Below are positions 1-56,083 of a stretch of 64,000 bases of DNA, in pieces. The DNA is from Rebecca billardiae RCC1528. Its lineage: Eukaryota > Protista > Haptophyta. Within the stretch, counting starts at the first letter, position 1. Each line of letters starts with the position of its first letter. Made by a program: the position numbers and the translations under genes. The notes beneath the pieces were generated by a model that made no database searches, was not told the DNA's origin, and saw only the letters and a list, made by a program, of their open reading frames with translations. The stretch spans positions 310,001-374,000 of the forward strand of contig OZ251249.1 of assembly GCA_965240325.2 (NCBI GenBank). Direction: 5' to 3'.

Positions 1-2824
1 GCGCCGCGGCGGTGGCGCGGATCGTCGGCGCGGCGTGGGCGCGGCTGCGCGCGCGCGCGCTCGCGTCGGGCGAGCTGCTCGCCGCGGCGGAGGCCGGCCC
101 GGAGATGGCTCGGATCCTGGCCGCGGACGCGCGCGTGCCGTTACGTAGGGTGTACGCAGCGCTCGGCGCTCCGATGGCGGAGGAGGAGGCGGCGGCGGGC
201 GGCGGCGGCGGCGGCGGCGAGCCTGGCGGCGGCGCGGCCGTCGCCGACGCCAACGCCGCGCACGCCGGCGGGACCGCGGCGCAGCGCGCGCTCGCCGCGG
301 CCGACGCGGCGCGCGGCGCGGCGGACGCGGCCGCCGCCGCGGCCGCGCGCGGCGGTCGGGCGTCGGGCGCGGCGATGGGCTCGGCGACGGACGCGGACGC
401 GGCGTGGGTGCGCGCGCTGTGCCTGCGGCGCGGCGCGCGGCCGGCGGTCGGGGGCGTGCTCGCGAGGCCGGCGCGCGCGGCGCGCGCGGACGCGGTGGCG
501 AGCGCGCTCGGTGCGGACCTGCGCGCGCTGCTCGCGGCCGACGGCGGCGAGGGCGGCGACGGCGGCGGCGCGGCGGCGGCGGCGGCGGCGGCCGCGCGCG
601 CGCTGCGCCGGCCGCACCTGCTGCTCGTCTCGGCCGGCGCCGGCGCCGACGGGCTCGGCGTGTTCCGCCGCTCGCTCTGCGAGCGCGCGCCCGCCCTGCG
701 CCACGCGCTCGCGCACAGCGCGCGCGCCGCGCGCGCCGCGCACGGCGGCGGCGCGAGCGCCATCTGTCTGACGCTCGAGGCTGCGGTGGCGGACGCGCCG
801 GCGCTGCTGTCGCGGCGCTGGGGCCTCGTGCTGCTCGACGGCGTGGAGGCGCACGCCGCGCCCTCGGCCGCGGCGGCGGAGGAGCCGGCGGCGGAGGGCG
901 GCGCGCGCCAGCCGTGGCACTGGTGCGCGCTGCTTGCGAGGCTGCGCTGCGACGCTCGACTGCTCGGCGTGGGCGGCGCCGGGCTGCCACTGTCGTGGCT
1001 CGGCGGCAGCGAGCCGCTTGGCGCGGACGCGGAGGAGGAGGACGAGGTAGCCGCCGGGGACGCGGCCGCCGCGGGCGCGGGCGCCGCGGGCTCGGAGGCG
1101 GCCGTCGACGTCGGCGACGTGCACTCGGGCGCCGCGGACGGCGGCACCGGCGGCGGCGGCACGGCGGCGTGTGGCGCGCGCGCGCGCGCCGCCGCGCCCG
1201 CGCTGCTGCTGCTGCGAGCGCTGTGTCCCGCCGCGGCCGCGTCTGCGGCGTGCGCGGAGGGCGACGACGCGGCGGCGGCGGCGGCGGGCGGCGGCGCGGC
1301 GCAGCTGCTGCGACGCCTCACGCGCGGCGGCGCGCCGGCGCCCGCGCCGCCCGCGCCCGCGCCCGCGCCGGCAGGCGCGGACGCGGACGGCGCGGACGCG
1401 CCCCTCGCAAACGTCGAGATTCTGCCGGTGGACCTCTCGCGCCGGCAGCGCGGCGCGTACGCGGCGGCGCACGCGCGCGCCGCCGCCGCACCCGCGGCGT
1501 CGGTGGAGGGCGGCGTCGGCGGCGCCGGCCGCGCGCGCGCGCTCGCCGCCGCGCACCTGCTCGCTACGCTGCGCGCGGCGGCCCTCACGCCGTCCGGCGC
1601 GGCCGGCGCGGGCGGCGACGACGGCGGCGCCGACGGCGGCGCCGACGGCGGCGCCGAGTGCGCCGAGGAGCCCCTGCTCGCCGCGTCGGCGCTGTGCGTG
1701 CGCTCGCTCGCGCTCACGTGCCCCGCGCTCGCCGCGTGCGCGCCCCCTCGCTGCGCCACGCTCGGCGCCACGCTCGCCCCCCTCGGCTTGTTCCTCGTCG
1801 AATCGTGCGATCTCGATTCTTACGACGCCGTCCGCGCGGCGACGCTGCGCACGCGCACCAACGCGCTCGTCGACGTGCCGATGCGCCGCGCGGCCGCGCT
1901 CGACGGCGGCGGCGGCGGCGGCGGCGGCGCGGGCGGCGCGGGGCCCGGGCCGGCGCTCGGCTCCACGCTGCGAGGCTTCTCTGACGCGCAGCACGAGACG
2001 CGAATCTCCTGGCGCCGCCGCGTGCGCGGCTGGGTCGCACTGGCCAACGAGGCGCGCTGCTTGCGCATGCCGCTGTACGGCGCCGGGCTGCGCGCGTCGG
2101 CGGCGCTGCCCGCGGCGCACGCGTGCGTGGCGACGCGCGCCGCGCGCCGCGGCACGCCGCCGTCCGACGCGCTCGCCGCGCTCGTCGGCGTCGCCGCCGC
2201 GTCGACGGCGGCGGCGCCGCGCGCGCGCGAGCTGCTGTCCGCGCGCACCGCGCGCGTGCTCGCGCCCGCGCCCGCGCTGCTGCTGACGCGCGGCGGCGCG
2301 TGCGGCGGCGCGGAGGGGGAGGCGGCGGGTGGTGCGGTCGTGGGCGCGCCGCGCCACCCGCCGCCCGCGCCGCCGCGCGCGCTCGCAGAGGCGCGCGCGC
2401 TCAGCTGCGCGCTGTGGTGCCACCTGCCGCGCGCGGCGGACGCGGCGCGCGTGGGCGGCGCGGCGCGCGCGGCCGCGGCCGCGCTGCGCGCGCTCGCGCC
2501 CGCGCACGGCCGCGCGCGCGCGGACGGCGCGGCGCGCACGCTGCGCGCGGCGCGCGGCCTCGCCTGCGCCGCCGACCCCGCCGCGCTCGACGCGCTGGCG
2601 TCCGCGCTCCTCCGCGCCGGCGTGCGCGCCGTCCGCGCGCCGCTGCGTGGCGGCGCGCTCGGCGGCGCCGAGGCTGTGCGCGCGTTTGCACGCGCGTGCG
2701 CCGAGCCGCGCGCGCCGCGCGTCGTCGTGCTGCTGGTCGAGCTGCCGCGCACGGCGGCGGAGGCGGCCGCGGCGGGCGGTGCCTTGGACTGGCGGCCGCT
2801 CGCCGACGTTGCCGCGGCCGCTGA

Positions 2825-2866
<42 letters not shown>

Positions 2867-3441
2867 CAACGGCGGCGGCGCGGCAGGCGGCGGCGGCGGC
2901 AACGGCGGCGGCGGCGGCAATGGCGGCGGCGAAGGCGGCGGCGAAGGCGGCAGCGCTCTCTTTGACGCGGCTCTGCTGCTCGACGCGCCGGCGGTGGCAG
3001 CCGCGGAGCCGGCGGCGGCGGCGTGCGCGCGCGCCGCGCGGCTCGGCGGCGCACCGCCCGCCGCGCGCACCATCGTCTGCGTCGCGCGCGGCACGGCTGA
3101 CGAGCGGCTGCTGATGCTGTCAGCGGCGGCGGCGCCGCCGCCGCCGCAGCAGCCGCAGCAGCCGGGTGCGGCGGTGCGCGCGGGCGCGCAGCACGGCGGC
3201 GCCGAGGGCTTCGAGGCCGCGTGGGCCGAGGCGACGCCCACGCTGCGCCCCGTCCGTCCGCACGGCGCCGCCGCCGCCGCCGCCGCAGCCGCCGCCGCCG
3301 CCGCCGTCGACGTTGCCGCCGTGCTCGCCGCCGACGCGGCCGCGCACAAAGTGGGCGCGCGGCCGCCGGCGGCGCCGCCAGCGCCGGCGGCGCCGCCGAC
3401 GCCCGCCGCGCGCGCGCCGCCGACGCTCGACTCGACGCCGA

Positions 3442-3472
<31 letters not shown>

Positions 3473-3778
3473 GAACAGCTCACGCGGCCGGCGCGGCGGC
3501 CGCGGCGGCGGCGCCACCGCGGCCGCGGCCGCGGCTCGCGCCGCCTCGGCCGCGGCGGTCACCGGCGGCGCGGCCGCGCACACAAAGTCGCTGGCGGGCG
3601 CCGGCGCGACCGGCAGCTCGGAAGCCAGCGCGGCCGCGGCGGCGGGCGCCGCGGACTCGGCCGCCGCCGACGGCGGCGGCGGCGGCACCGCCACGCAGCT
3701 GCAGAGCGTCGCATGGGCGCGCGCGCTCGACGCGGCGCACGCCGCGGCCGCCGCCTCGCGCCCGCGGCCTCGGCTGAG

Positions 3779-3811
<33 letters not shown>

Positions 3812-3995
3812 AGCGCCCGCCGCGGCGCGGCTCGGTGGGGCGTGCGCGCGCAGCGACGATGGCGAGGGCGACAGCGAGGCCGAGTCGGTCTCGTCCTCCT
3901 CCTCCGCCGCCTCCGACTGCGGCGCCGCCGCCGACGACGCCGACGACGCCGACGCCGACGTCGAGATGGCCACCGCCACCGCCACCGCCGACGCC

Positions 3996-4028
<33 letters not shown>

Positions 4029-4447
4029 AGTGACGCGTGCTCGGCGGACGCGGAGGGCGGCGCGGAGGGCGCGCGCCGCGCGCGCTGGGCTGCGCGGCTG
4101 CGGCCGGTGCAGCGCTGGCAGCTGAGCCAGCTCGCACGCCAGCTCGCCGACGAGGCGGAGGCGGATGCGGACGCAGCGGCGGACGCGGCGGCGGCGGACG
4201 CGGCGGCTGCCGCGCCCGCCGCTTCCGCGGCCGCGCCCGCCGCCGCGTCGTGCGCCGGCGTGGCGGCGGTGGCGGCGCCGCCGAGTGAGGCGGAGGCGGC
4301 CGCCCTCGCCGCGCTCGCGCGCCTCACGTCGCGCGCGCCCGCGCAGCAGCCGGACGGCGCCGCCGCCGCGGGCGCAGGAGGCACGCTTTGCTATTGGCGT
4401 GGCGGCGGCGGCGACGGCGGCACCGGCGGCGGCGGCGAGGCGGAGGC

Positions 4448-4492
<45 letters not shown>

Positions 4493-5127
4493 GGCCGTGG
4501 GCTACGACACGCCGCCGGCGCCGCCCTCGCCCGCGTCGGCGGACGGCGGCGGCGCGAGCGCCGCGGCCGACGCCGCGCACGCCTCCGGACTCGCCGGACT
4601 CCGGCTGTCGCTCTGGCTGCCGCCGTTTGCGCCCGGCGGCGGCGGCGGCGGCGCCGCCGACGACGCCGACGGCGGCGTGCCACGCGTGCGCGTCGACCCG
4701 ACCATCGGCGCGCACGCGGGCTCGGGCGGCGTCGTCCAGCTCGCGTTCGCCACCGCGCTGCACACGCACGGGGCCGACGCGGTGCTCGAGGCGCTCGGGC
4801 TCGCGGCGGGCGGCGCGCGCGCGCGCGCCGCGGGCGCGGGCGGCGGCGCGCACGCGCGGCGCGGCGGCGCGGCGGGCGGCGGCGGCGCCGCCGCCGCGCA
4901 CGGCGGCGGCGGCGGCCCGCTCGGCCGCCGCTCCGACAGCTGGGACTCGGAGGACCAGGAGATGGCGGAGATCTTCGGCGTGCTGCCCGCGGCCGCGGCC
5001 GCGCGCGCCGCCGCGCTCGGCGGCGGCGCGTCCGCGCTGCTCGGTGGCGCCGTTTCGTCAAAGGCGAGTAAGCGCCGGCTGGGCGAAGACAAGGCGTTCG
5101 AGAAGCGCTCGCACAAGCGCGGCGCGA

Positions 5128-5159
<32 letters not shown>

Positions 5160-8100
5160 TCGGTCGCGGCGGGCGGCGGGCTCTTCTCCGCGGCGGCGCG
5201 CGGCGCGTCGGGCAACGCCGCGCTCGCCGCCGCCGCGCAGCGCGCGCGGCTGGCGCAACAGCAGAAGGGCGCGGCGGCGGACGGCGCCGCGCCGCGCGCC
5301 GTCGAGCCCCCCTGGTCTGCGGCGGAGGACGCGCTGCTGTTGCGCACCGTCGGCGCGTACGGGCTCGGCGCGTGGGGGCTGTGCACGGCGGCGCTCGGCG
5401 CGGTGCACGGCTCGCGCCCGCGCTCCGCGCGCGCGTGCGCCGAGCGTTGGATCGCCTTCTCGCCCGCGGCGCAGACGGCGGCGACGCAGCGCGCCGCGCT
5501 CGGCGCCGCGTCTGCGCTGCCCGCGCCGGACGCCTATGGCCGCGCGCCCTCGGCGCAGCCCGCCGCCGCCGCGGCGCTCGGCGGCGGCGGCGCGGCGGGC
5601 GTGGGCGGCGCGGCGGGCGGCGCGGGGACGGGCACCTCTGGCGGTGGCCTGCTCACGCACGCCGACGTGGCGCTCGCCGACGCCGCGGCCGCGCGCGCGC
5701 TGCGCGACGCGCGGCCGGGTGCGCTCGGCTCCGCGCCTTCGCTCTTCTCGCCGCCGCCGCCCGCCGCGGCGGGCGCGGGCGGCGGCGCGGCGAGCGCGGG
5801 CGGCGGCGGGCCCCCGGTGTTCCGCGCGGCGCTCGCGCTGACGCACGGCCACGCGCAGCGGCTGCGCGCCGCGCTCGCCGCCTCGCTCAAGGACATCCCG
5901 GGTGCGGTGCCAGGGTCCATGGGCGGCGGCGCGAGCGGACAGCCGTTCACGCCGCCGGCGGAACACCCGAGTCACGCGCTCGGCGGCGGCGGCAAGGGCG
6001 GCGGCGGCGGCGGCGGCGGCGGCGGGCGCGGCGCGCCGATCGCCGCAGACCCGCTCGCCCTCGACTTTGCCGCCGCGCTCGGGGAGGACGTGGACGAGCC
6101 GGCGGCGGCGCCAGCCGCGGCGGACGGCGGCGCGCCAGACTCGCCGCGACGCGCGGCGCGCGCCGCCGCCGAGCGCGCGCGCGCCGCCGCCGCCGAGCGC
6201 GCGCGCGCGCCGCCCGGCGGCGGCGCGCCGGGCGCGGGCGGCGCGCTCGGCGGCGCGGGCGGCGCGCTCGCCGCGCCCTTCCTGCGCCCGATGGCGCCGG
6301 CGTTCCAGCCGGGCGGCGCGGCGCTCGCGGCGAAGGCGGCGGCCGCTCGAGGTGTGTTCAGCGCCGCCGCGCCGCCGCGCCGCGCGCCCACCGCGCCGCG
6401 CTCGCGCGCCCATCGCGCCGCGCCGCGCGCGGCTCCGCTGACACGCCTAGGGTCGGGTGAGGGGAAGGGTGACGCGGCCGCGTCGCTGACCCGCCGCGCG
6501 CGCACCCCTCCTCGCGCGCGCGCGCGCTCGCTCGCCGCAGCGGCTGGCGGCGCGGCCGGCGCGGCCGGCGCGGGCGCGGCGGCGGGTGGCGGCGCCGGCG
6601 CGAGCAAGGCCGGTACAAAGACCGCCGCGCCGCGCCGCCCTTCCAGCAAGGCCGCTGCCGCCGCCGCCGCCGCCGCCGCCGCGGGCGGCGAGCAGCCCTC
6701 GCCGGCCAAGTCGCCGTCCAAAGGTGCGTTGTGTGCGCGGGCCGGGGGGAGGGTGAGGGCTAGGGCGTGGCTGTGGCTGTGCGCGCATGCTTGTTTATTG
6801 TTTTTGTTTCTTTTGATATTTTTTCCTGACGCTTGTGCGTGGAGGCACGTGCGTGCGGTGCTGTGTGTGCGTGGCACGCGTGCGTGCGTGTGCGCGCGCG
6901 CGCGCCGCGCGTCGGCCGCTCCGCTCCGCCTGCGCCATGCGGCGCCCCCGCGCGAGCCGCGGCGCGCCGGTGTCGCGAGCCGCCGTGCGCGCGCCACGCC
7001 CGCCCCCGCGCGCGCCGCGGCGCTCCGCTCACACGCACACACCGCGCGCGCCCGCGGCTGCGGTGGCGCGCGCGCGCAGGCGGCGGGCGCGCGGGCGGCA
7101 AGCGGCCGCAGGGCCAGGCGGCGGCAAAGGCGGCGGCGGGTGCAGCGCAGCCCGCGGCGACGCTCACAGCCGCGCAGCAGCAGCAGCAGCAGCGCGCGGC
7201 AGCCGCCGCCGCCGCCGCCGCGGGCCGTCAGCCGGGCGCGGATGGCGCGCAACCCGCCGCCGCCCTCGGCGCGGCCGGCGCGGCCGCGCAGGCCGCGGCG
7301 GCGGGCGGCGGCGCGGCCACGCCGCAGCAGCAGGCACGGCGCGCCGCGCGCGCGCGTCTCGCGCTGCCGCCGCCGCGCGCGCGCCGCCGCCGCCGCACGC
7401 GCACGCACGCGAGCGCACAGCACAACACGGCGCCGGTCTCGCGCGCTCACGCGCACACCACCGCACGCACGCGCGCGCGCCGCCCGCGCCCGCGCGCGCC
7501 GCCCGCAGGCGCTCGCCGCGCGCATCAACGCCGCGCGCGCCGCCGCGGCCGCGGGCGCGCAGGGCGGCGCCGCGCGGCCGGGCGTGCCGGGCAAGGGCCT
7601 GCCGATGGCGCTCCTCATCCAGGTGTGTGCACTGTGCGAGATTGCGCCGAGATTGCGCCGAGATTGCGGGCGTGCGCGCGGCACGGCGGCGAGGCGTCCA
7701 AGTGTCGCGCGGTGTGCCTGCTGATGGGCGGCGGCCGCGTGCCGCGCGCCTGCGGGCGCTGTGCGCTGCGCGCGGCGCGCCGCTCTGCGCGCCGCCCGCC
7801 ACGGCGCGCGGCGGTGGCGGCGGTGCGCTCACCCACGCGCCCTGTGCTTGCACCCGCCCGCCCCGCCCGGCGGCGTGTGCGCGCCCGCGCCACCGCTGCC
7901 GCCGCGGCCGTGGCCGCATCGCGCAACGGCCGACACCGCTGCGCGCCTCGCGCCCGCTCGCAATCTCGGCGCAATCTCGGCGCGATCTCCCGGCAGGAGA
8001 TCCAGAACAAGCCGGCGCTCAAGCCTGAGATCCAGCGCATCGTGCAGCGCGACGACCTGAACGAGGCGCAGAAGATGGCGGCCATCCAAGCGCTGATCAA

Positions 8101-8266
8101 GCCGAGCGCGGCCGCGGTGCAGGCGGCGGCGCAGGCGCACGCGCAGGCGCAGGCGCAGGCGGCGGCGGCGCAGGCGGCGGCGCAGGCGGCCAAGACGCCG
8201 GGCGCGCCCGCGCCTGGCGCGGGCAGGCAGGGCGGCGGCGGCGGCGCGTCGGGCTCCGGCGCCTGA
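1..8266 (+). CDS. SWR1/p400/EAF1-like protein with HSA-like tail, degenerate (pseudo) SNF2 ATPase and SANT/Myb domain; 5' truncated by window
   Basis: Frame is open from the window start. Proposed exons <1-6351, 6541-6723, 7080-7333, 7509-7622, 7997-8266 (third intron GC-AG). Colinear degenerate SNF2 motifs (RPHLLLVS, RRWGLVLLDGVE, LSRRQRGAY, ARAARLG, VARGTADERLL). SANT-like PPWSAAEDALLLRTVGAYGLGAW...RSARACAERW at ~5303-5455. Confidence 0.75.
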
Positions 8267-8940
8267 CGCGACGATGCACGGCGCAGGCAGCACCGAGCAC
8301 GCACGTCGCACGCCGCCGGAGTTTGGAGCAGGCTCGGCCGCGGCGTCTCGGCGGCCACGCGTCCTGACGAGCCGGCTCCGCAGCCCGCGGCAGTCCGCGG
8401 CACGACCGGCGTCACGTGTAGTCCTTGCTGCTGGCGCGAACACATATATATATATATATATAGTACATAAGTCATAACGGTGCAGATCGACTACCCCTGA
8501 CAGCTATACTGCGCGGCCGCCATATCACACAGCTCATAGTATCGTATAGTAGTAGTATAGTATAGCGCGCAGCAGATCGATTATGGCCCGCGGTGCAGGG
8601 CGGAGCGCGTAGCGTGGAGCCCCGCCGGGGGCCCTCACTACGTTGTCAAAAAGATCTTTTGATCAAAGAAAAGGGGATGGGGGACGATTTTGAGGGCTGT
8701 TGGAGGGTGAGTTTTCGATTTTTCGAGGGGTACGTTGGCCCATAGTGCTCTACTGCATTAGCAACTACGCGCTTGACGAAATAAGCGCGCCCACGCCATT
8801 CCGAATAAGTCGATGGACGGACGTGGGATCAGATACCCCGGGGGTGAAACAAGTGAGTATTTTTGTCCTTCTTGTATGCTGGAGTACGAGTTTGCCGAGC
8901 GACGTTTGATTGTTTTGGGTCGAAAACAGCTATGAGGCCA

Positions 8941-9218
8941 GATTCTTTTGAATAGCGCTTGCGAAAAGAAGTTACCCGCCTGTCTCGATGGATGAACCGC
9001 CTCATGGTATTGAAAGAGATTCTTTTGAATAGCGCTTTTAAACCAAGTTATTACCCACCTGTCTCGTTGGATGAACCTCCTCGTCATATTAAAGAGATTC
9101 TTTTGAATAGCGCTATTTTAAGCCAGTTACCCGCTTGCCTCGATGGATGAACCGCCTTGATAATATTGAAAGATATTCTTTTGAATAGCGCTTGTCACAA
9201 CCAAGTTACCCGCCTGTC
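8941..9218. repeat. AT-rich tandem array, ~78-bp unit, ~3.6 copies
   Basis: GATTCTTTTGAATAGCGCT recurs at ~8941, 9018, 9096 and 9174, each followed by a GTTACCCGCCTGTCTCGATGGATGAACC-like block (truncated in the last copy). Confidence 0.9.
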
Positions 9219-42228: not shown

Positions 42229-45200
42229 ATGGGCGAGGCTGACGAGCCGCCCGTCGACCTCTTCGCGGGCGAGGCTCGGCGCCTGCGGATCGACGAGCAC
42301 GAGTGCGCGCGCCGCGCGCCCCCGCCGCGCGCGGCGCGCGCGCGCCGCGTGCGCCCCGCGCCAGCTGGCTGCCGCGCGCGCGCGCGGCCGCGCGCGCGGC
42401 CGCGGGCAGTGCGCGCATGCCGCCGCGCGCGCGCACGCCGCACGCGCGCGCGTGCTGACGCGCGCCTCCTCGCGCGGCGCGCGCGCGCACGGCCCGGCGC
42501 GCAGTGACGTGCGCGCGCGGCTGCGAGCGCTCGCCTCGCAGATCGAGTGGCTGCAGCAGGGCCGCTCCGTTCTCGACTGGCGGCCGCCGACGCCTCCGCC
42601 GCCGCCTCGGCCGATTTACTCGGCGTCGGACTCAGAGGACGAGGAGGGCGAGGAGGGCGACAGCGACGACGAGTCGGACGGGGAGGAGGACGGCGGGTCG
42701 GCGGACGGCGGCGGGCGCGGCGCCGAGCAGGACGAGCCGGACGGCGCGCGCGCCAAGCCCGCCGCCCGCGGCGCCGCGGCCGCGGCCGGCGCGCGCCGGG
42801 CGATAGTGGATGCGAGTGACGGCAGTGACGACGAGGAGGAGGCGGCGGCGGAGGCGGGCGGCGAGGGCGAGGAGGGCGAGGAGGACGACGACGAGGAGGT
42901 GTCCTCCGATGACTCGGACGACGACTCGGACTCGGACTCGGGCTCGGAGGAGGCGGAGGCGGAGGCGGAGGCGGGCGCGGCCGGCGGCGGCAGCCGCGGG
43001 CGGGGTGGCGGCGCGGCCGCGCGCGGGCGCGGCGCGCACGGGCGCGGCGGCGCGGGCGCGGGCGCGCGAGGCGGCGGCGCCGTGGCGCGCGGCGGCGGCG
43101 CCGGCAGCAGGGGCCGCGGCGGCAGCGGCGGCGGGCGAGGCGGCGGGCGCGGCCGCGGGCGCGGCGCCGGCGCCGAGCCGGCGCAGCGGCCGCAGCCGAC
43201 GCGCGTCAACGGCCCTCGCGCGGCGCGGCCGCCGTCCGGGGCGGATCGCGCGTCGACGCTGCGCAGCCGCGCGGCGGCGGACGACGCGCCCGCGCCCGAC
43301 GGCGCGCCCGCCGCGGGCGGCGGCGCCGTCGGCGCCGTTGGCGGCGGCGGCGGCGTTGGCGGCGGCGGCGGCGCGGCCAAGCCGCCGTCCGCCGCGGCTG
43401 CTGTGAGCGAGGCGGAGAAGGTGCAGTTGCTCCGAGCAGACCGGTGCAAGATCGAGCACGACGGCGCGCTCGCCAAGCTGCGCCGGCTCTCGCGCGTCAC
43501 CGCCGAGCCGCTCGCGCACCGGTGAGCGCGCCGCGCCGCGCGCCGCGCCCTGCGCCGCGCGCCTCGCGCCGTCTCGCGGCCGCGCCGCGCGCGCGCACAA
43601 CACGCACGTGTCGGCTCACGCGCCGCGGCCGCGCCCGCCGCCCGCCGCCCGCCGCCCGCCGCCCGCGCGCAGCCCGCGCACGCACCGCAACTACCTGCTC
43701 GAGGAGATGGCGTGGCTCGCCAAGGACTTCTCCGACGAGCGCAAGTGGAAGCTCGGGCAGGCGAGGCGCGTCGCGCGCGCCGTCGCCAAATGGCACGAGG
43801 ACTCGGAGCGGCGGCGGGAGAAGGCAGCGGCTGATGTGCTCGGCGCGCAGCGGCGCACGGCGGGACGCATCGCGCGGCACGTGCGCGCGTTCTGGGCGCA
43901 GGTGGAGCGCATCGCGGTGTGGAAGCACGAGATTGTCGTCGCGAAAATCCGCGAGCAGACGCGGCAGAAGCAGCTGGACTTCCTCGTCGGTCAGACGGAG
44001 CGCTATTCGTCGCTGCTCATGCAAGACATGCAATCTGCTGCGCCCGGCGGCGGCGCGGGCGCCGGCGGCGGCGCGGCGGATTCGGGCGGCGGGCGGGGCG
44101 ACGCGCCCGCCGCGGCGCCCGCGGCGGACGCGGCGGACGCGGGCGCGGCGCTGGACGGTGGCTCGGGCGCGCGCGCGCCGCCGCGCCGGCGCACGCGTGT
44201 CTCGGGGCGCGGCGCGGACGAGCCGCTGCTCGAGCTGCCGAGACTGCCGGATCGCGCGGACCGCGCCAAGCGCTCGCGGCTCGAGCGGCGCACGGGCACG
44301 CCGCCGCGGCCGGGCGCCGCGCCCGCGGGCGCGCCGGCCGCGCGCGGCGCGCGCTCCGAGCGCGGTGCGGGCGGCGACGACGCGACGTCGGGCGCGGCGG
44401 CGGAGGAGGAGGAGGAGGGCGCCCACGGCGCCGCCATGTCTGAGGGCGAGGACGGCTGCGGTGACGTCGCGCCGCCCGCGGGCGCGCCGCCCGCCGCCGC
44501 GGGCGCGCCGCCGGCCGGCGGCAGCGCCGACCCGCAGGCCGCGGCGGGCGCGGCGGCGGGCGCGGCGGCGCCGCCGGCGCCGCCGCGCGGGGACTGTCTG
44601 ACCGGCTTCGAGCCCGGCGCGCTGCCGGCGGGACTGGAGCGCGCGGCGGGGCGCATGCCGCCGCGCGCGCTCGGCGCGCCCGCGGGCGCGCACGAGCGCG
44701 ACGCGCCGGCCGCGGCCGGCGCGCGGCGCGAGCCCGGCCGCGGCCGCGGCCGCGGCCGCAGCCGCGCCGCCGCCGCCGCCGCCGACTCCGCCTCCGACGC
44801 CGACGACGACGACGACGGCGGCGAGGGCGCGCGCCTGGCCGAGCTGCCCGAGGGCGAGCGGATGCAGGTGAGTGCGCGCGGCGCGCGTGGCGCGTGGGGC
44901 GGCGCGTGGCGCGTGCGCGCGTGGCGCGCGTGGCGCGTGCGTGCGTGGCGTGTGGCCGGCCGGCCGGCCGCGTGCGCGCCCCTCTGACCTGCGCGTGCCA
45001 CGCACTCCGCTGCTGCTTGCGGCTGCGGCTGCCGCGCGCGCGTAGGCGGCTGTGGACGCGGCGGCCGCCTCGATGCCCACGGGCCACACCCTCGCCACCA
45101 CGCGCACCAAGGTGGCAGTCCCGCACCTCATCCGCGCCACGCTCCGCGAGTATCAGCACGTCGCGCTCGACTGGCTCGTCTCGATGTACGAGAAGAACCT

Positions 45201-47239
45201 GAATGGAATCCTCGCGGACGAGATGGGGCTGGGTGCGTGGCCGCGCGCGTGCGTGCGTGCGCGTGTGCGTGTGTGCGTGCGTGCGGGTGTGCGTGTGCGT
45301 GTGCGTGTGCGTGTGCGTGTGTGCGCGTGCGCGTGCGCGTGCGCGTGCGCGTGCGCGTGCGCGTGCGCGTGCGCGTGCGCGTGCGCGTGCGCGTGCGCGT
45401 GCGCGTGCGCGTGCGCGTGCGCGTGCGCGTGCGCGTGCGCGTGCGCGTGCGCGTGCGCGTGCGCGTGCGCGTGCGCGTGCGCGTGCGTGTGCGTGCGTGC
45501 GTGTGCGTGGGCGTGGGCGTGGGCGTGGGCGTGGGCGTGGGCGCGTGCGCGTGCGCGTGTGCGTGCGCGTGCGCGTGCGCGTGCGTGTGCGTGTGCGTGT
45601 GCGTGTGCGTGTGTGTGTGCGTGTGCGTGTGCGTGTGCGTGCGTGTGCGTGTGCGCGTGCGTGTGTGTGTGCGTGTGCGTGTGTGTGCGTGTGCGTGTGC
45701 GTGCGTGTAGGGTGTGTGTGCGCGTGTGCGCGCGTGTGTGCGTGTGCGCGCGCGCGCCTCCTCCCTCGCCCGCTCACGCCACCGCCTCCGCACCGCACCC
45801 ACCCGCCCCGCGCCCCGCGCGCACACCGCCCACACGCCCCCGACGTCCGCGCGCAGGCAAGACGATCATGACCATCTCGATGCTCGCGTGGCTCGCGGTC
45901 GAAAAAGGTATCTGGGGGCCGCACCTGATCGTCGTGCCGACAACCGTGATGCTCAACTGGGAGATGGAGGTGAAGAAGTTCGCGCCCGCGTTTAAGATCC
46001 TCACGTACTTCGGCTCGCTCAAGGAGCGCAAGGCGAAGCGGCAGGGCTGGTCGCGCACCAACGCCTTCCACATCTGCATCACGAGCTACAAGCTCGTCAT
46101 CCAGGACCAGGTGTGCGCGTGTGCGTGTGTGCGCGTGTGTGCGCGTGTGTGTGTGTGCGTGCGTGTGCGCGTGACCGGACCGGCGATGCGCGCACACGCA
46201 CGCACGCACACGCACACGCACGCACGCACGCACGCGCGCGCGCACGTGCTTACGCGCACGCACTTGCTTACGCGCGCGCGCGCGCGCCGCGGCAGGCGGC
46301 GTTCCGGCGGAAGCGGTGGAAGTACCTCATCCTCGACGAGGCGCACCACATCAAGAACTTCCGCTCGCAGCGCTGGCAGACTCTGCTCCACTTCAACTCG
46401 AAGCGGCGGCTGCTGCTGACTGGCACGCCGCTGCAGAACAACTTGATGGAGCTCTGGTCGCTGCTGCACTTTTTGATGCCGCACGTGTTCGAGTCGCACG
46501 CCGAGTTCAAGGAGTGGTTCTCCACGCCGGTGCGCGCGCGCGGCCGTGGGGGCGGCGGCGGCGGCGGCGGCGGCGGCGGCTCGCCGCGCGGGCACGGCGG
46601 AGCGCTGGCCCGGCGCGCGGCGGGCGGCGCGCACTCACGCGCCACGCGTCCGCGCGCTGCCCCTGTGTGCGGTGCGTGTGTGTGTGTGTGTGTGTGCCGC
46701 CCGTTGCGGCGGCGGCGCGCAGGTGACGGGGATGATCGAGGGGACGGAGGCGGTGAACCACGCGCTGATCGAGCGGCTCCACTCCATCCTCCGCCCATTC
46801 CTCCTCCGCCGCCTCAAGAAGGACGTCGAGAAATCGCTGCTGCCCAAGATCGAGCACGTCGTCGAGTGCGGTCTTTCCAAGCGGCAGCGGCTGCTGTATC
46901 ACGATTTCATGGCGTCGTCGGAGACGCGCGGCACGCTCAAGGGGGGCTCGTTCCTCGGGATGATGAACGTGCTGATGCAGCTGCGCAAGGTGTGCAACCA
47001 CCCGGACCTCTTCGAGGAGCGCCCGATCCTGCTCCCGCACGAGATGCGCCCGCTGGTCGTGCCCGCGGCAGGGCTGGCGCTGGGCGCCGCGAGCGTGCTC
47101 GGCGGCTGCGGCTTTGCGCGCGGCGCGGTGTTTGGGTGGCACGGCGCGGGGGGCAGCGCGCGCGCGCGCGCGGGCGCCGCCGCCGCGCCGCCGCCGCCGC
47201 GCGCGTCACACGCCGGCGGCGCCGCCGCCGCCTCGGCAA

Positions 47240-47305
<66 letters not shown>

Positions 47306-50300
47306 ACGCGCAGCAGCTCCCGCTGGGCGCGCGCGCGGGCGGGCTGCTGTGGCGGCTGTTCAACCTGGACCTGGCGGACGCGGAGGCGGAGGGGCTCGAC
47401 CCGCTCGACTGCCGCCGCGCCGCGGAGCTCGCGATGCCCGCCGACTGCGTCGCGCGCGGCGAGCCGCCGCCGCCGCGCGCGTCGCCGCCCGCGCCCGAGC
47501 CGCCGACCGCGCCGCCGCCGCCGCCGCCGCCGCTGCGCGACGGCAGCGGCGGCGGCGGCGGCTTTGGCGGCGGCGCGCTCGCGGCGGCGGGCGGCGCGCC
47601 GCCGGCGGCGCGCGCGGGCACGCCGCCGCCGCCGCACGCGCCGAGCGCGCCGCAGCCACCGCCGCAGCAGCCGCCGCAGCCGCCGCGCGCGCCGCCGCCG
47701 CCTCAGGGCTCATTCGGCGCGGCGCCGCGCCGCGCGGCCATGCTGTCTTTGCTCGCGGACACGACGACGGTGGCGCCGGCGCTGCTGCCGCCCGCGGCGG
47801 CGCAGGCGCAGACGCAGCCGCCGGCGCAGACGCAGCCGCAGACGCAGCACGCGCAGCAGCACGCGCAGCAGCCGGCCGCGCCGCCGACGCCGCCGGCCGC
47901 GGGCGGCTCGCGGCGCGCCGAGGCAGCGCCCGCCGCGGACGGCGCGGCCGACGGCGGCGGCGGGCGCGCGGCCGCGCCCGCGGCGGAGGCGGCGGCGGCG
48001 GCCGCCGCGGCGGACTCGCGGCTGGGCGAGCTGATCGGCGCGCGCGCCGCGCGCGAGCGCGCGTGGCGCGGCGCGCGCCGCGCGCACATGGGGGCTCTTT
48101 CGGAGCGGCGCTGCGCGCGCGCGCCGCTGCTTGGGTGGCGCGCGCGCGCGGCCGTGGCGGTGCCGCCGCGCGCCGCGCTGCTCGCGGCGTGCGCCGAGTA
48201 CGCCGACGCGTGCCGCGACGGGCGCAGCGCGCCCGACGCGCGCGAGGCCGGCTGCGCCGGCGCGCCGCCGCACGCCCGGCGCGCCGCACCGCCGCACCGA
48301 GCGCACCACCACGCGCGCGGCGGCGCGCGCGCGGCCGACGCTTCGGCCGCCGCCGAGGCGCCGGTGCTGGGCGCCGGGTTCGACTTCGAAGCTTTGGTCC
48401 GGCGCGACACTCGGCTGCAGCTGCTCTCGCTCGGGGCGCTCTTCAGCGCCGCGCCGGTCGAGCGCAGCGGCGGCGGCGGCGGCGGGGTGGTGGTGCCGCC
48501 GGCGGCGCCCGCCGCGGCGGCGCCGGGCTCTGAGGAGGCCGCGCCGGCCGCGCCGGCCGCGCCGGCCGCGCCGCCCGGCGCCGGCGCCGACGCCGACGCC
48601 GCTGACGACGAGGCGGCGGCGGGCGCGGCCGACGGCGCGCCGGCGTCGTCGCCCGCCGCGCCCGGCGCCGCGCCGCCGCCGCCCGTGCCCAACGCGCCCG
48701 AAGGCGCGCTGCACGCGCACGCGGCGCCGAGCGCACGCGCCGCGCCGCTGGCCACTGACGAGTGGCTTGGGTTTGCGCCGCCGCTGGTGAGCGGGCTGCG
48801 CGGCCGGCTGCGCGCGCTGCCGCACGTGGTGGCGCACTACACGGCGATCACGCGGCAGGCGTCGGCGCGGCCCGCGGTGCTCTGCGCCTCGCGCACGCCC
48901 GCGGGCGAGGCGGGCGCGGCCGCGGCCCGCGAGTCGCTCGCGCGCGCCGCCGCCGCCGGCCGCACCGCGCTCGCGCTCCGGCCGTTACAGCTTCGTCAAC
49001 AGGTGTTCTTCCCGGACAAGCGGCTGATGCAGTGGGACTGCGGCAAGCTGCAGGCGCTCTCGGGGCTGCTGCGCACGCTGCACGCCGAGGGCCACCGCTG
49101 CCTCATCTTCACGCAGATGGTGCGGGGCGCGCGCGGCGCGGGTCGCGGCCGCGGTCGGCGCGGAGGCGGTGCCGGGCCGCCGCGCCGCGCGCGCGCCCAA
49201 GCTGTGCGCACTCCGGCCTTGCCGCCCGGCCCCGGCGCGGCCCGCGCCCGCCCTCGCGCGTGCGCGCCGCCGCTCCGCGCCCTCCAACCCTAACCCTACC
49301 CGCACCCCTAACCCTACCCCTACCCCTATATACCGCGCAGACGCGCATGCTGGACGTGCTCGAGGCGTGGATCAACATCGCGGGCTACACCTACCTGCGC
49401 CTCGACGGCTCCACCCGGGTGCGCGGCACCCTAGCCCCAAACCCACCCTCACCCTAGCCCGAACCCGCGTGGAGCTCCACGCGGCCGGCCGCGCGGCACG
49501 CGCCGCGCGCGGGCGCAGGCGCGCAGCACCACGCACACGCGGCCGCGCGGCGCGCGCGCGCGCGCGGTGCGCATCGCGGGCACGGGGCGGCGACTGGGCG
49601 GCGCGGGTGTGCCGGGGCGGCCGGCCGCGCACCCGCCGGACGGCGCCCGCCGCGCCGCGCTCACGCTTCGCCTCGCGCCCCTGGCGCGCGGCGCCGCCCC
49701 TCGCGCCACCGCCGCCGCCTTCGCCCCGCGCGCGCTCGCGGCGCCGCAGGTGGAGGACCGACAGCGGCTGATGGACCGTTTCAACCTCTCGCCCAAAATC
49801 TTTATCTTCATCCTCTCGACGCGCTCCGCCGGGCTCGGCATTAACCTGATCGGCGCGGACACGGTGATTTTCTACGACTCGGATTGGAACCCGACGATCG
49901 ACCTGCAGGCGCAGGACCGCGCGCACCGGATCGGGCAGACACGCCAGGTGCACATCTACCGCCTCGTATCCACGGCCACCGTCGAGGAGAACATTCTCAA
50001 GAAGGCGACGCAGAAGCAGCTGCTCGACTCAGTCGTCATCCAGGCGGGCGGCTTCACCACCGACTTCTTCAAGCGGGTGAACCTCTCGGAGCTGCTCGGG
50101 GCGGAGGCGGCGGCGGCGGGCGGCGGCGCGGAGGAGGAGGAGGAGGGCGCGGCGGCGCCAGCGGAGGAGGCGGCGGAGGGCGCGGGCGCGCCCGGCGCGG
50201 CCGAGCGCGCGGCGGGCGCGCCCGCGGCCGCCGCCGGCGCGCCGCCGCCATCCGCGCCGGGCGGCGGCGGCGCGGGTGGCGAGGAGGAGGGCGCGGACGA

Positions 50301-51208
50301 GGCGGCGCTGATGCTGGACGAGGAGGACCGGCGGGAGGCGGAGGCGGCGCGCAGATACGCCGCGGAGGAGGAGGTGCGTGTGCGCGCGTGTGTGTCTGCG
50401 CGTGCGCGGTGTGCGTTCGTGTGCGCGTGGCGCGCATTGCGTGTGCCCCTGTGTGTGTGTGCCACGCGCGGCGCTGGCGCTGAGGAAGCAAACACTCTAT
50501 AGGTTAAGGCAACCGAGTCGCCCCTCCGGGGGCGAGGTGCGGACAACCGACTGTTTCAGCCCATCTGAGCCAACGCCGCGCGCAGGCACCGGGCACCGCA
50601 CGCCGTGCGCACGCGCGTGTGTCCGCCTGCCCACGCGCGCCCGCTGCCTGCCTGCCCGCGCCCGTCTAACCCTAACCCACCCTCACCCGAACCCTACCCC
50701 TCAACGCAGGCGGAGTTTGACGAGACCATGCCGCTGCAGGCCGCGGACGGCGCCGACGGCGCGCCGCCGGGCGGCGCCGAGGGCGGCGGCGGCGCGCGGC
50801 CCCCGGGCCGCTCGGCGGACGGCGGCGGCGGCGCCGAGCCCGGCGGCGCCGACGGCGGCGCGCCGCTCGTGCCGCTCGCGCGCGAGGACTCGGCGCTGCT
50901 CGCAGAGATGGGCGTGGCGGACCCGACGGCCGCGGTGCCGGGCGGCGAGGGCGGCGGCGGCGGGATGGGCGGCAGCGCGGAGGAGGTGGAGGCCATGCTG
51001 ACGCCAGTGCAGCGGTGCGCGCGTCCGCGCGCGCACCGTGGCGTTGCGGGCGGCGGTGCCAAGCGCCGTGCAGCCGGGCCGCGCGCGCACGCACGCCGTG
51101 GCGGCGTCGCGTGCGCGCGCGGCCCCAACCGCATACACTCACCCTCGCCCTCCCCTGCACACGCACGCACACACACACACGCGCACACGCACACGCACAC
51201 ACACACAC

Positions 51209-51275
<67 letters not shown>

Positions 51276-52002
51276 CACACGCACACGCACACACACACGC
51301 AGGTACGCGCTGCGCTTCCTGGAGGAGGTGGCGCGCGTGGTTGAGGACCAGGGCTCTGTGGAAGAGGCGCTGGACGTGCAGCACGAGGCGTGGGAGCTCG
51401 AGCAGCTGCAGCGGATCAAGGTGTGCCACCCGCGCACACCGCGCGTGCACGCGCGCGGGTGTGCTCGTAGGCTGTGTGGGCATGCGGGTGTGCATGCACG
51501 CATGCGGCTGTGCTGTGTGCGCGCGTGTGTGTGCGTGCGTGTGTGTGCGTGTGCGCGCATGTGTACGCACGTGCGCGCGCGCGCGCGTGTGTGTGTGCGT
51601 GCGTGCGTAGGGGCCGCCTAGGCACGCGCGCCCCTCGCGCACGGACTGCCACGCCGCGCCCTTGCAACGACCCCCGCTCCCCATCGCAACGCACGCATGC
51701 CACACCCCACGGCACGACACACCCTCATTCTCGCACGCACGCACACGCACACACACGCACACACACGCACACACACACGCACACGCACGCACGCACACAC
51801 GCACGCACACACACACACACGCACACACACACGCATACGCACGCACGCACACGCACGCACGCACACGCACGCACGCACACGCACACGCACGCACGCACAC
51901 ACGCGCACACACACGCGCGCACACACGCGCACGCGCGCCCGCAGGAGACGGAGGAGGCGCGCGCAGACGAGGACGACGAGGTGTTCTTCACGGAGGTCGC
52001 GC

Positions 52003-52034
<32 letters not shown>

Positions 52035-55000
52035 TCGGACGAGGAGGGCGACGACGCGTACGACCCTTCGCTCCACACGATCCACTACCTGCTGCAGCAG
52101 AACCAGCGCGGCCTCGAGTCCACCGCCGAGTTGGAGCGTCTCGAGCTGCAGCTGCTCGGGCACACCGGTGCGGCGCCGGACCGCCGCGGCCGCGCGCGCG
52201 CTCGCGCCTGCGGCGGCTGCGGCGGTGGGTTGGGGGGAGGGCGTGGCGCAGCGCTGCGGCATTGGCAGCTGCGCCTGCCGCGGCGCGGCACGCGCGCGCG
52301 GCGCGGCCGCGCGCGCGCGGGGCTGCGCCCGCGGCGCGCGTGCGTGCACGCCGCCGGCCGCGTGGCCGGCGCGCGCGCGGGCGCGCAGCTGACGCGCGTG
52401 CGCCGCGCCGCGCCGCCGCGCCGCCGCGCCGCCGCGCCGCCGCGCCGCCGCGCAGGCGTGCACGACGCCGACGCCGACGCGGCGGGCGAGGAGGAGGAGG
52501 GCGAGGGCGGCGGCTGGGCGCACCGGCGCAAGCCGCCGCGCGGTTCAAAAGGCGGCGGCGCGCGGCGCGGCGGCGCCAAGGGCGGCCAGCGCTCCGTCGC
52601 CTTTGCCGACGGCGGCGACGGCGGCGGCGGCGCGGACGCGGCGGACGACGACGGCGGCTCGGAGGGCGGCGCGGACGGCGGCGGCGCGTGGACGGACGAC
52701 GGCGCCGACGCGGACGCCGACGACACTGGGGCAGGCACAGATGGTGAGCGTACCGACACTGAGCGCGACGGTGGCGGCGCCGACGGCGGCGCCGACGGCG
52801 GCGGCGGGCGCGGCGCCAAGCGCAGCGCGGCGCAGCCCAACGGCGGCGGCGCGCGCGGCGGCGCGCGCGCCGAGCGCCACCGCGCCGCCGCCGGCCTGGG
52901 CGGCGGCTCCGAGTCGGAGGACGAGGAGGAGGCGGGGCAGCGCGTGCGCTTCAGCGGGCGCTCGGGCCGGCCTGTGAAGCCGCGCCGGAGGCTGGAGGAG
53001 GAACGGGTGCGCGCGCACGCCCTAACCCTAACCCTAACCCTAACCCTAACCCTAACCGCTCACCGCGCCACCGCAATGCACCGCACCGCACCGCTGTGCA
53101 CGCCACACCGCGCCGCGCCGCGGCGCTGTGCACACCACACCACACACCACCGCCGCTGTCTGTGCACACCGCCGCTGCGCACTGCACACTGCGCCGCACC
53201 GCGCCGCGCCGCGCCCGCCGGCGCGCGCCACTCGGCGGCTAGCACAGCGCGCGCGCCGTGCGCTATGCTGAACTCGCCGCCACCCGCGCCGCCACCCGCC
53301 GCGCGCGCGCGCGCGCGCGCAGCTCGCGGGCGGCGGTGGGCTCATGTCGCGCAAGCACCTGAAGGGCGCTGGTGCGAAGGGCGGCGGCGGCGGCGGCGCG
53401 CCGCTCGGCGGCGGCGGCAAGCGCCGCCGCGCCGACGCCGGCCTCGACGACGACTTTGAGGACGACGCGGACGCGGCGGGCGGCGGCGGCGCGCTCGGCG
53501 CCGCCGGCCCCGGCCGCGGGCTCTTCGTGCGGCGCTCGGAGGCGAGCCTCAGCGCCGCGCGCAAGGCGGCCCTCGCCAACGCGCGCCCCGCGCGCACGCC
53601 CTTCAGCGCGCAGGAGGAGGGGGTCTTGCGGCAGCACGTCGACGTGAGCGCGCGCGCGCCGCGCGCGCCCGCGCGTGCTTGCTCACGCGCGTGCGCCCGC
53701 GTGCGCGGCCGTGCGCCCTCGGGCCGAACGGATTGCACTGCTACATGAGCTTGCTCACCCGAGCGCTGCTCGCTCTCCCGGGCTCACCCGCGTGCGCCCG
53801 CGTGCGCGGCCGTGCGCCCCTCGCGCGCACGCGCGCGCACGCGCGCGCCGAGCTGACGCGCCGGCGTCACCGCGACGCCACCGCTCCGCGTCCGCGCGCG
53901 CGGCCGCGCAGGCGTGGGGCGCGCACTCGTGGAGCCTGGCGGCGCACTCGCTCGTGCACGAGTCGGGCGTCGCGCGCGCGCCGCGCACGCCGATGCAGTG
54001 CGAAGTCGCGTGGCACACACGCACGCAGCGCGAGGGGGGCGGCGGGGGCGGCGGCGGCGGCGGCTCGGTACAGGGCTGGGCGTGCGACGAGGGCGGGCGC
54101 GCGCGCTCGGCCGATGCGTACCTCTCGCACGCGAGCCACGCGCCGCCGCCGCAGCCGTGCGCGTCCACGCTCGCCGCCGCCGCGGCCGCGAGCGCCGCCG
54201 CGCACGCCGGCCGCGCGGGCGGCCCCGAGCGGCGCTCCGCGACCGCGGCCGCCGCGGCCGCGGCCGCGGCCGCGGCGGGCGAGGGCGGCGGGCGCGGGCG
54301 CGGCGCGGGCGCGGCCGCGCCGAGGCCGCCTGCCAAGCTCGAGAAGCTCTGCCGCACACACGCGCACCTCATCAGCTCGCGCGAGGCGGAGGTGGCCGCC
54401 GCGCTCGCCGAGGGCTTCAAGAAGTTGAGACTGCCGACCGCGGCGCGCGCGGGCGCGGCGGCCGCGCGCGGCGGCGCGGGCGGCGGGGGCGCTGAGGGCG
54501 CCGGTGGCTCGGCCGAGGGCGCGCCCGCCGCGCCCACGCCCGCGCCCACGCCGCGCACGCCGCGCACGCCGCCCGCGCCGCCCGCCGAGGCCGCCGCCGT
54601 CGCCGCCTCGCCGCGCGAGGCGGCGCGGCTCCTCATGCGCGCCTCGCCCGCCGCCACGCCCGCCGCCATTGCACTGTGTGAGATGGTGGCGCGCGCGCTC
54701 CGCGCGGCCGAGGGCGGCGCCGGCGCCGGCGCCGGCTCGGAGGCGGAGGCTGAGCCGCTGCCCGCGCCCTCCGCCCTCGCCGCCGTCGAGACCGTCGCCT
54801 CCGGCGCGCAGGTGCCCGCGGGCTGCGCCGCGGCGCTGTGCGGCGCGCTCGCACCGCCGCAGCCCGGCCGCACGCTGCCGCGCGTGCTCCAGCTGGGCCT
54901 GGGCGAGCCGCCGGTGGTCTCGGTGCTGGCGGCGGCGCGTTGGCTGTACGGCGCGGGGGCGCCGACGCCGCGCGCCGAGGCGCCGCCCTCGCCGATGCGT

Positions 55001-56051
55001 GTCGACGCGGACGGACGCGACGGCGGCGAGGAGGAGGCGGCGGAGGAGGGCGGCGGCGACGACTGGACGCTCGCAGTGCCGCCGTCGCCGACGGCGGAGG
55101 GCGCGCCAGCGGCGGGCGCGCCGCCGGCGCCGCCCTCGCCCACGTTCCGCACCTCCGCGCACGGCGTGTGCGCCGCGCCGCGCGCCGCCGTGCTGCGCGC
55201 CGCGGCGCTCTCGGCCGCGCCCGCCTCCGAGCTCTACGCGCCGCCGCCGCCAGGCAGCGCGCTCCCCGAACCCTCGTCGGGCGGCGGCGGGCTTGGCGGG
55301 CTCGGCGGCTTCAGCGGCGCAGACTGCGAGCTGCTCGGCGTGCTCGGCCTCGCCGAGGGCCTCGCGGGCGCGCAGGCGGCGGTGGCGGCGCGCGGCGCGG
55401 CCGGCGCGACGCTGGCCGCGGCGGTGCCGCCGACCGCCGCCGCGCCGCCGAAGCGCGCCGCCGCCGCCGCCGGCGGCGCGGGCGAGCACGCCGCGCATGG
55501 CTGCGCGGGCGGCGCCGCGGCCGTGCTGCCGCCGCCGCCGCTGCCGCCCGCCGCCCTCGAGCCGATCGTCCGGCTCAACTCGTTCGCCCGCGAGTTCACC
55601 CTTGGCCCCGGCTCGGGCGGCGGCGGCGGGCTCGGCGCGGCCGAGGGCGGCGGCGGCGGCGGCGGCGGCGGCGGCAAGGGCGGCGGCGGCAAGGGCGGCG
55701 CGCGCAAGGGCGGCGGCGGCGGCGGCGGCGGCGGGCGCGCCGCCACCGACGCGGCCGGCGCGCCGCACAAGCCGCCCGCGCACGCCAGGCGGCCGGGCGG
55801 TGGCGGCGGCACCGCCGACGCGGCGGGCGGCGGCGGCGCGGACGGCGCGGCCGCCGCCGCCGCCGCGGGCAAGGCGGCCGCGCGGCCCAAGGCGGCGGGC
55901 GGCGGCGCGGACGGCGGCGCGGCCGCGGCCGCCGCCCTTGTCGCCGCCGCCGCAGCGGACGGCCCCGCCGCCACCGCGCGCGGCGGCGGGCGCGGCGGTG
56001 GCGGCGGCGGCGGGCGCGGCGGGCGCGGCGGTGGGCGCGGCGGCGCCAAGC

Positions 56052-56083
<32 letters not shown>

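Follow-up and report, generated by a model that had tools for sequence, protein, structure and literature searches.

A SWR1/p400 paralogue with an apparently decayed ATPase motor, and its active neighbour, in the haptophyte Rebecca billardiae

The SWR1 machine, which carries out H2A.Z exchange, and the NuA4/TIP60 machine, which carries out acetylation, are merged in animals and separate in yeast. The evolutionary origin of the merged and the separate arrangements is an open question, and the customary account of p400 is that Eaf1 and Swr1 fused. The locus described here comes from Rebecca billardiae RCC1528 (assembly GCA_965240325.2, contig OZ251249.1, positions 310,001 to 374,000 of the forward strand), a stretch of 64,000 nucleotides that is called the window and within which all positions are given. 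It holds two genes of SWR1/p400 type. The one at 1-8266 is a paralogue whose ATPase has decayed and is referred to as the motor-dead copy, or dead copy (the ORF1 gene; ORF, open reading frame). The other, 35 kb downstream, is referred to as the active copy.

Gene model and composition of the dead copy

The dead copy runs off the left edge of the window, its frame being already open at nucleotide 3, and its 5' end, with any HSA domain included, lies beyond that edge. Exons and gene pieces were searched and folded separately and the intron calls were read from the sequence (Table 1). The only T-rich, lower-GC stretch of the gene falls within the predicted intron that follows the main exon. Further downstream, nucleotides 7509-7622 encode a segment ending in KGLPMALLIQ, with KGLPM at nucleotide 7593 and a donor CAG/GTGTGT at 7622/7623; the sequence up to nucleotide 7996 reads CCCGGCAG and the last exon then opens. 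The 7622/7997 junction gives exactly the 10-residue spacing between GLPM and PALK that is found in a relative on metagenome contig L002. The resulting C-terminal motif, which in the dead copy is visible after splicing only, is also present, together with a SANT domain, in the related loci L010/L011. Keeping the frame between the exon from 7080 and 7509-7622 would call for a candidate GC-AG intron at 7334-7508, as a matter of bookkeeping and not of evidence. In the form KGLPM-x10-PALK-x-I-x-x-IV-x-R-x-D-x-x-EA-x-KMA-x-I the motif closes haptophyte-type SWR1/p400 proteins, its sites being 13742-13906 on L002, 14723-14857 on L010 and 7593-8101 in the window; no Pfam family was found on the segments that hold it, and no search aimed at the motif was made.

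The first 8.3 kb of the window is 83-85% G+C, and the residues of the product are to 33% Ala, to 15% Gly and to 9% each Leu and Arg. Trinucleotide-repeat tracts occur at 2825-2955, built of (CGG)n, at 3266-3426, built of (CGC)n, and at 4401-4495, built of (GGC)n. The original prediction, an earlier reading of this DNA, had stated that the frame stays open for more than 6 kb, and this is borne out: the forward-strand frame has no stop from nucleotide 3 to 7724, the other five frames have between 5 and 11, and 10.3 in-frame stops would be expected when each codon position is shuffled separately. The G+C content of third codon positions (GC3) is 0.93-0.98 from nucleotide 3 to about 6300, equal to that of the active-copy exons, and the periodicity ends at the first predicted intron. 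The dead copy is free of introns across 6.7 kb that correspond to an intron-bearing part of the active copy. Just downstream of it lies a 79-bp tandem repeat at 8940-9218 (3.6 copies, 78% matches), with an (AT)n run ahead of it near 8450.

Table 1. Positions of the two paralogues and their parts in the window (residue numbers are those of the ORF in the frame from nucleotide 12; a slash within a motif marks an exon boundary)
Feature	Position	Strand	Remarks
Dead copy (ORF1 gene), ATPase-degenerate SWR1/p400 paralogue, 3' part	1..8266	+	open from nucleotide 3; collinear with the L002 gene from insertion to C-terminus
Main exon	3..6723	+	2240 codons; ends at canonical donor AAG/GTGCGT (6723/6724)
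Possible last turn of HSA helix, VARIVGAAWARL	12..47	+	candidate from motif-level match alone
Degenerate RecA lobe 1, residues 160-281	489..854	+	Ia-like PHLLLV and RRWGLVLLD strand
Walker A relic GEGGD, residues 179-183	546..560	+	opposite GLGKT, Lys and Thr gone; Smith-Waterman and hhalign
Walker B relic D-GV-EAH	837..854	+	DEAH split by two residues; Smith-Waterman and hhalign
ILPVDLSRRQRGAY block	1419..1460	+	counterpart of VVPCPLSKRQRELY after SWR1 lobe 1; hhalign P 0.0036
Inter-lobe insertion, residues 588-796	1773..2399	+	counterpart of the RuvBL-binding insert of EP400/SWR1; tblastn E 2e-11
Position of RecA lobe 2, residues 800-1060	2409..3191	+	interrupted by the (CGG)n poly-Gly run 2825-2955
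LRPVQRWQL	4098..4124	+	possible counterpart of LTPVQLYML / LTPVQRYAL; order right, weak, p 0.01-0.06 (Smith-Waterman)
SANT/Myb-like domain, residues 1766-1818	5307..5465	+	tblastn E 1e-5 against L002
Predicted intron, GT..AG	6724..7079	+	read from sequence, tentative; codon periodicity lost here
Penultimate exon(s)	7080..7622	+	exact structure of 7080-7508 uncertain; frame bookkeeping
Intron, GTGTGT..CAG	7623..7996	+	splicing joins KGLPMALLIQ to EIQNKPALK
Last exon with C-terminal motif EIQNKPALKPEIQRIVQRDDLNEAQKMAAI	7997..8266	+	stop 8264-8266; tblastn against L002 C-terminus E 1e-4, 53% identity
Active SWR1/p400-type paralogue	43677..57604	+	HSA, intact ATPase in at least six exons, diverged insertion, LTPVQ/RYAL, split SANT, Q/P/Y-rich tail

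Retained and decayed parts of the dead copy

The dead copy is homologous to, and collinear with, the haptophyte p400/PIE1-type SWR1 family, in which an HSA is followed by a split Snf2 ATPase that carries a long insertion, then by a SANT and the C-terminal motif. A phmmer search of 1.84 billion representative proteins with ORF residues 1-1100 returned four matches (P0001-P0004, E 2.4e-13 to 2.7e-12), all of them fragments of genuine SWR1 ATPases and all lying on residues 550-800. P0001 comes from L002, a metagenome contig of 26.5 kb on which an HSA - SNF2 - Helicase_C - SANT gene is complete, and a metagenome scan with an alignment of the insertion segment yielded 11 further loci, each 41-44% identical to the ORF. 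When pieces of the L002 protein were compared by phmmer with the real ORF and with 1000 locally shuffled ORFs, the insertion reached 61.3 bits and the SANT 18.4 bits where the best decoys reached 7.3 and 4.5, a score of 1.8 bits for lobe 1 (at residues 160-281) was reached by 2 of the 1000 decoys and one of -0.7 bits for the LSKRQR block (at residues 469-499) by 10, and neither lobe 2 nor the HSA gave a signal. Two other approaches yielded little. A home-made composition-adjusted matrix was captured by a Lys-rich island at residues 1681-1704, with only the insertion block surviving, and a homologue search with residues 540-800 came back empty, being swamped by low-complexity words and restricted by its length window.

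The insertion holds CDLDSYDA, WRRRVR..NEARCLRMPLYGAGLR and APAPALLLTR at 40-45% identity to relatives, and with them the SWR1/EP400-type NERRCxxxPxYG motif of the long inter-lobe insertion. The retention of the Rvb-contacting motifs that the original prediction had proposed agrees with the phmmer result (E ~1e-13). In the PDB the sole match of a profile of the insertion motif was to EP400 residues 1748-1778 (LVNERRCSQAPVYG), at a borderline E of 0.049. The SANT lies C-terminal to the ATPase region, as in p400, PIE1 and Domino; the isolated segment matched Pfam Myb_DNA-bind_6 with an E of 2e-4 (score 21.7, just below the gathering cut-off of 22.9), and a SANT family profile that included the ORF matched MYB21 at 3.5e-9, the SANT of EP400 at 4.5e-5 and Eaf1 at 0.055. 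The candidate HSA tail gave no phmmer signal, and the best match to an HSA tail in the ORF falls elsewhere.

It had been proposed that the ORF aligns with the active gene block by block and in order. The 14 ORF strings quoted in support all exist in the order given (at residues 1, 131, 147, 200, 251, 268, 304, 475, 517, 667, 680, 1004, 1024 and 1363), and 12 of the 14 SWR1 strings occur verbatim at 43869-49966 (+), the other two, GLG/KT and LTPVQ/RYAL, spanning introns. The collinearity itself stands above chance for the insertion, the SANT, lobe 1 and LSRRQRGAY, LRPVQRWQL is weak (Table 1), and the pairings of the HSA tail, of LATLRAAALTP and of the lobe-2 strings are at chance level.

Both RecA lobes have become so degenerate that they lie at or beneath the limit of detection, and Ala/Gly trinucleotide-repeat tracts have invaded them. 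For lobe 1 the Smith-Waterman score (BLOSUM62) of 54 lies above all 2000 of 2000 shuffles, and the hhalign comparison, which covers 120 columns and keeps that register, gives a P of 0.0029, with PHLIVVP opposite PHLLLVS and LVLDEAH opposite VLLD-GV-EAH. The Walker A pairing suggested earlier, GGVLARPARAAR, is probably out of register, lying some 25 residues upstream of GEGGD, and the loss of Walker A (GxGKT) and motif III (there is no TGTP), as well as of DEAH as an unbroken box, is evident in either register. GLGKT, LDEAH, TGTP, DWNP and DRAHRIGQ are kept by the active copy and are intact in the related loci, L002 and L010/L011 included, wherever these are covered, whereas the dead copy has none of them. 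Because the Walker A Lys and Thr, the contiguous DEAH and motif III are gone, the dead copy cannot be an ordinary ATP-driven remodeller.

A RecA or SNF2 profile match had been put forward as a check on the homology: lobe 1 gave only the weak hhalign match above, lobe 2 gave nothing and Pfam, run on the whole ORF and on isolated segments, found no SNF2-rel_dom or Helicase_C even at an E of 10. Similarly, a PDB search with the ORF returned no Snf2 structure, its returns being Gly-linker noise. With a lobe-2 profile hhalign paired only DWRPLADVAA with DWNPTIDAQA; two registers can be drawn, with DWRP at residue 926 or with LLLDAP/ACARAARLG near 990-1010, on either side of the poly-Gly tract, and neither is significant. 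Features from a protein language model (ESM) placed residues 125-560 nearest to SNF2-rel_dom clusters (score 0.92) and residues 800-1060 nearest to Helicase_C clusters (28 of 30 matches, score 0.91), which are leads only and are exactly the families expected at those two segments. In single-sequence AlphaFold2 models the strands of the two lobe segments fall on PHLLLV, GLVLLD, VVVLLV and TIVCV, and helices and strands alternate in the lobe 2 segment (predicted local distance difference test, pLDDT, 43.6).

The active copy and reciprocal conservation

Between 43.6 and 50.1 kb Pfam recognises in the active copy an HSA (E 1e-16), a Helicase_C and, spread over three pieces of exon, SNF2-rel_dom. 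The ATPase of the active copy is 80-88% identical to that of L002 by tblastn. Downstream of the ATPase the gene continues with LTPVQ/RYALRFLEE.. and ..DEDDEVFF.., and then with a SANT-type domain that is cut by an intron near 53644/53925 (about 53600-54030) and was missed by Pfam on single ORFs. A Q/P/Y-rich, prion-like tail (56900-57604) ends the protein, with a stop at 57604, in place of the KGLPM..PALK motif of its relatives. The original prediction had taken this gene for a Swr1 of HSA and ATPase without a SANT; because it has a SANT of its own it is of p400/PIE1 type (HSA-ATPase-SANT) and not a bare Swr1, so that both copies would share the p400/PIE1 layout. A reading of the two copies as a split between HSA plus ATPase and SANT was dropped once the intron-split SANT had been found. 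The introns of the active copy at 45235-45858, 51040-51300 and 51560-51900 consist largely of (CA)n/(GT)n-type microsatellite and translate as CVCV, RVRV and THTH runs.

Both genes were projected on L002 coordinates by composition-corrected tblastn. The dead copy matches at 981-1102 (insertion), 1918-1962 (SANT) and 2391-2424 (C-terminus) and the active copy at 257-373 (HSA) and at 609-960 and 1231-1420 (ATPase), with zero overlap between the two. The ATPase of the active copy is 80-84% identical to that of every related locus, and that of L002 about 83% identical to that of L010; the lobes of the dead copy have fallen to about 25% or less. In contrast, the insertion, SANT and C-terminus of the dead copy stand at 41-50% identity to relatives, where L002 and L010 stand at 57.6% to each other, and these modules are conserved almost as between orthologues of different lineages. 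One insertion block can be aligned in both copies, scoring 144 in the dead copy against 96 in the active copy, and in per-block scores the active copy is at noise level for the CELDSYDA block, the SANT and the C-terminus. The main argument that selection may still be acting on the dead copy is that lobes which are normally conserved at about 83% have been lost, whilst faster-evolving modules remain near the orthologue level and the frame, the codon periodicity and the splice junction have been kept. Trees were built from tblastn matches of several exons set on L002 coordinates, from which selected columns were concatenated. In separate trees each copy joins the unresolved centre of the relatives on a long branch, and a clade of the two copies was not rejected (approximately unbiased test, p 0.43), a result that long-branch attraction would also give.

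Interpretation and comparison with known systems

In the human TIP60 complex (TIP60-C) the scaffold is EP400, of which the HSA holds the actin module, the insertion enters the RuvBL1/2 ring and the SANT binds TRRAP (PMC11578891), and the DOM-A complex acetylates without needing its own ATPase (PMC7239659). EP400 and Domino-A share with the dead copy the order (HSA) - split Snf2 with long insertion - SANT, with the HSA of the dead copy lying beyond the window; EP400 shares the insertion motif NE(R/A)RCxxxP(L/V)YG, at its residues 1748-1778, and its SANT is matched by the SANT family profile. Unlike the dead copy, where they are destroyed, EP400 and DOM-A retain the canonical ATPase motifs, and the dead copy, which is known from sequence alone, differs from both in the Ala/Gly repeat tracts of its lobes and in its haptophyte-specific C-terminal motif. 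The haptophyte-type SWR1/PIE1-like genes (L002, L010/L011) are collinear with it from the insertion to the last exon and 40-50% identical to it across the insertion, the SANT and the C-terminal motif; the active copy differs from L002 and L010 in having no C-terminal motif and in its diverged insertion and SANT. Plants have both PIE1 (HSA-ATPase-SANT) and an ATPase-less EAF1, a coexistence that has been described as plant-specific (PMC4358907), and PIE1, the active partner, also carries a SANT, as the active copy does. As with Eaf1/Vid21 and plant EAF1A/B, the locus would place a non-catalytic platform of HSA/SANT type, the HSA again outside the window, beside an active SWR1-type ATPase. The weak similarity of Eaf1 to the SANT profile (E 0.055) does not imply orthology, and in Eaf1 proteins neither a remnant of an ATPase nor a RuvBL insertion accompanies the HSA and the SANT, whereas the dead copy has about 900 residues of decayed ATPase with a conserved insertion upstream of its SANT. 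No description of an ATPase-dead SWR1/p400 paralogue was found in the literature searched.

The core of the original prediction, a SWR1/p400-family paralogue with destroyed ATPase motifs and selective retention of the insertion and SANT, holds up. We regard it as probable, rather than assured, that window 1-8266 is most of a gene for a full-length paralogue whose motor has decayed and which has been kept under selection as a non-catalytic platform after duplication. The ancestral roles would then have been divided between the two copies, the downstream one keeping the motor and with it H2A.Z exchange and the dead copy surviving under selection as the platform. Human EP400 offers the analogy: the RuvBL1/2 ring would bind to the insertion of the dead copy and Tra1/TRRAP to its SANT region, and the dead copy would be a TIP60/NuA4-type scaffold, functionally comparable to Eaf1 or to Drosophila DOM-A; such an Eaf1/NuA4-scaffold role is plausible, and the locus may fit the picture of a p400-type protein as a pure platform. 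It is possible, if doubtful, that the locus represents a p400-type motor caught part-way into an Eaf1-type NuA4/TIP60 platform, by duplication and decay of the ATPase and independently of fungi and plants. If this were true, Eaf1-like platforms could arise by fission and degeneration of a p400-like ancestor, rather than p400 by fusion of Eaf1 and Swr1, and the RuvBL insert would persist as a structural part within an acetyltransferase complex. Should the decayed motor, the kept RuvBL insert, SANT and C-terminal motif and the sister gene of reverse pattern hold together, the locus would provide a concrete example of the opposite route, from duplication to subfunctionalisation, and the dead copy would be a natural separation-of-function allele made by evolution.

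A number of considerations weigh against this interpretation. The openness of the 2240-codon frame is moderate evidence, and weaker than had been implied, because a fully open frame arises in 0.1% of dinucleotide shuffles at 84% GC. Homology of lobe 2 gave no signal by phmmer, Smith-Waterman or hhalign, and the single-sequence models of both lobe segments are of low confidence (pLDDT 40-44). Trees of the shared columns do not resolve the date of the duplication. The check for orthologues with a decayed ATPase found none in the 1.84e9 representative proteins or the JGI metagenome contigs, 13 of 13 related loci being intact. The HSA of the dead copy is outside the window, its Eaf1 equivalence, its link to NuA4 and the independent SWR1/NuA4 split that had been proposed are by analogy only, and the active copy, which also has a SANT, could itself scaffold a TIP60-like complex. 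The case as a whole is drawn from a single genome and from sequence analysis.

The dead copy could instead be a decaying pseudogene, a redundant SWR1/p400 duplicate drifting under GC-biased mutation and trinucleotide-repeat expansion, with the open frame and the similarity as leftovers. The destroyed catalytic motifs, the Ala content of the product and the lengthy repeats of CGG, CGC and GGC would suit such a history, as would a locus known from its DNA and with no orthologue among the proteins and contigs searched, and at this G+C content long open frames are no great rarity. However, neither disruption of the frame nor loss of codon periodicity nor uniform decay is seen: in-frame stops are absent where about ten would be expected, GC3 periodicity is intact over 6.3 kb, decay differs strongly between the lobes on the one side and the insertion, SANT and C-terminus on the other, and an in-frame junction with the ancestral spacing still results from the GT-AG intron that precedes the last exon. 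The reciprocal conservation of the two copies also argues against a plain pseudogene, which is considered unlikely, though deserving of some weight. Rather less probable is a product that is functional and non-catalytic without being a NuA4 platform, such as an assembly factor or decoy competing with active SWR1 for RuvBL1/2 and shared subunits, or part of a further SWR1-like complex, without a motor, whose lineage-specific role would be linked to the C-terminal motif. In its favour, conservation is highest in the RuvBL-type insertion, a part absent from yeast NuA4/Eaf1, the KGLPM..PALK motif is a feature of the haptophyte family and the active copy still has its own SANT. Nothing speaks directly against such a role, which differs from the NuA4-type platform in its partners only; the retained insert is compatible with a TIP60-type scaffold as well, because human TIP60-C has RuvBL1/2 on the EP400 insert.

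That the dead copy is a still active, highly divergent ATPase is very improbable. In the Ia and Walker B regions hydrophobic strands persist and there are some Arg residues near a putative motif VI, but the Walker A Lys and Thr have been replaced (GEGGD), DEAH is split, motif III is unrecognisable, a poly-Gly tract lies inside lobe 2 and there is no Helicase_C/SNF2 profile signal. Chance resemblance of a low-complexity, Ala/Gly/Arg-rich open frame in 84% GC DNA is scarcely credible. It would account for lobes without a Pfam or PDB match and for the failure of composition-corrected BLASTP to find anything between the ORF and all forward-strand frames of the window's SWR1 gene; without the correction the comparison is uninformative because everything aligns with everything. 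Against it stand the E of ~1e-13 to genuine SWR1 insertions in the 1.84e9-protein search, the decoy tests and the collinear SANT and spliced C-terminal motif, and for the insertion, SANT and C-terminus these results have disposed of chance.

Between the two paralogues lies an ORF at 39825-41318 (+) with a GPR1/FUN34/YaaH domain (Pfam E 1e-35), a family of acetate-transporter type.

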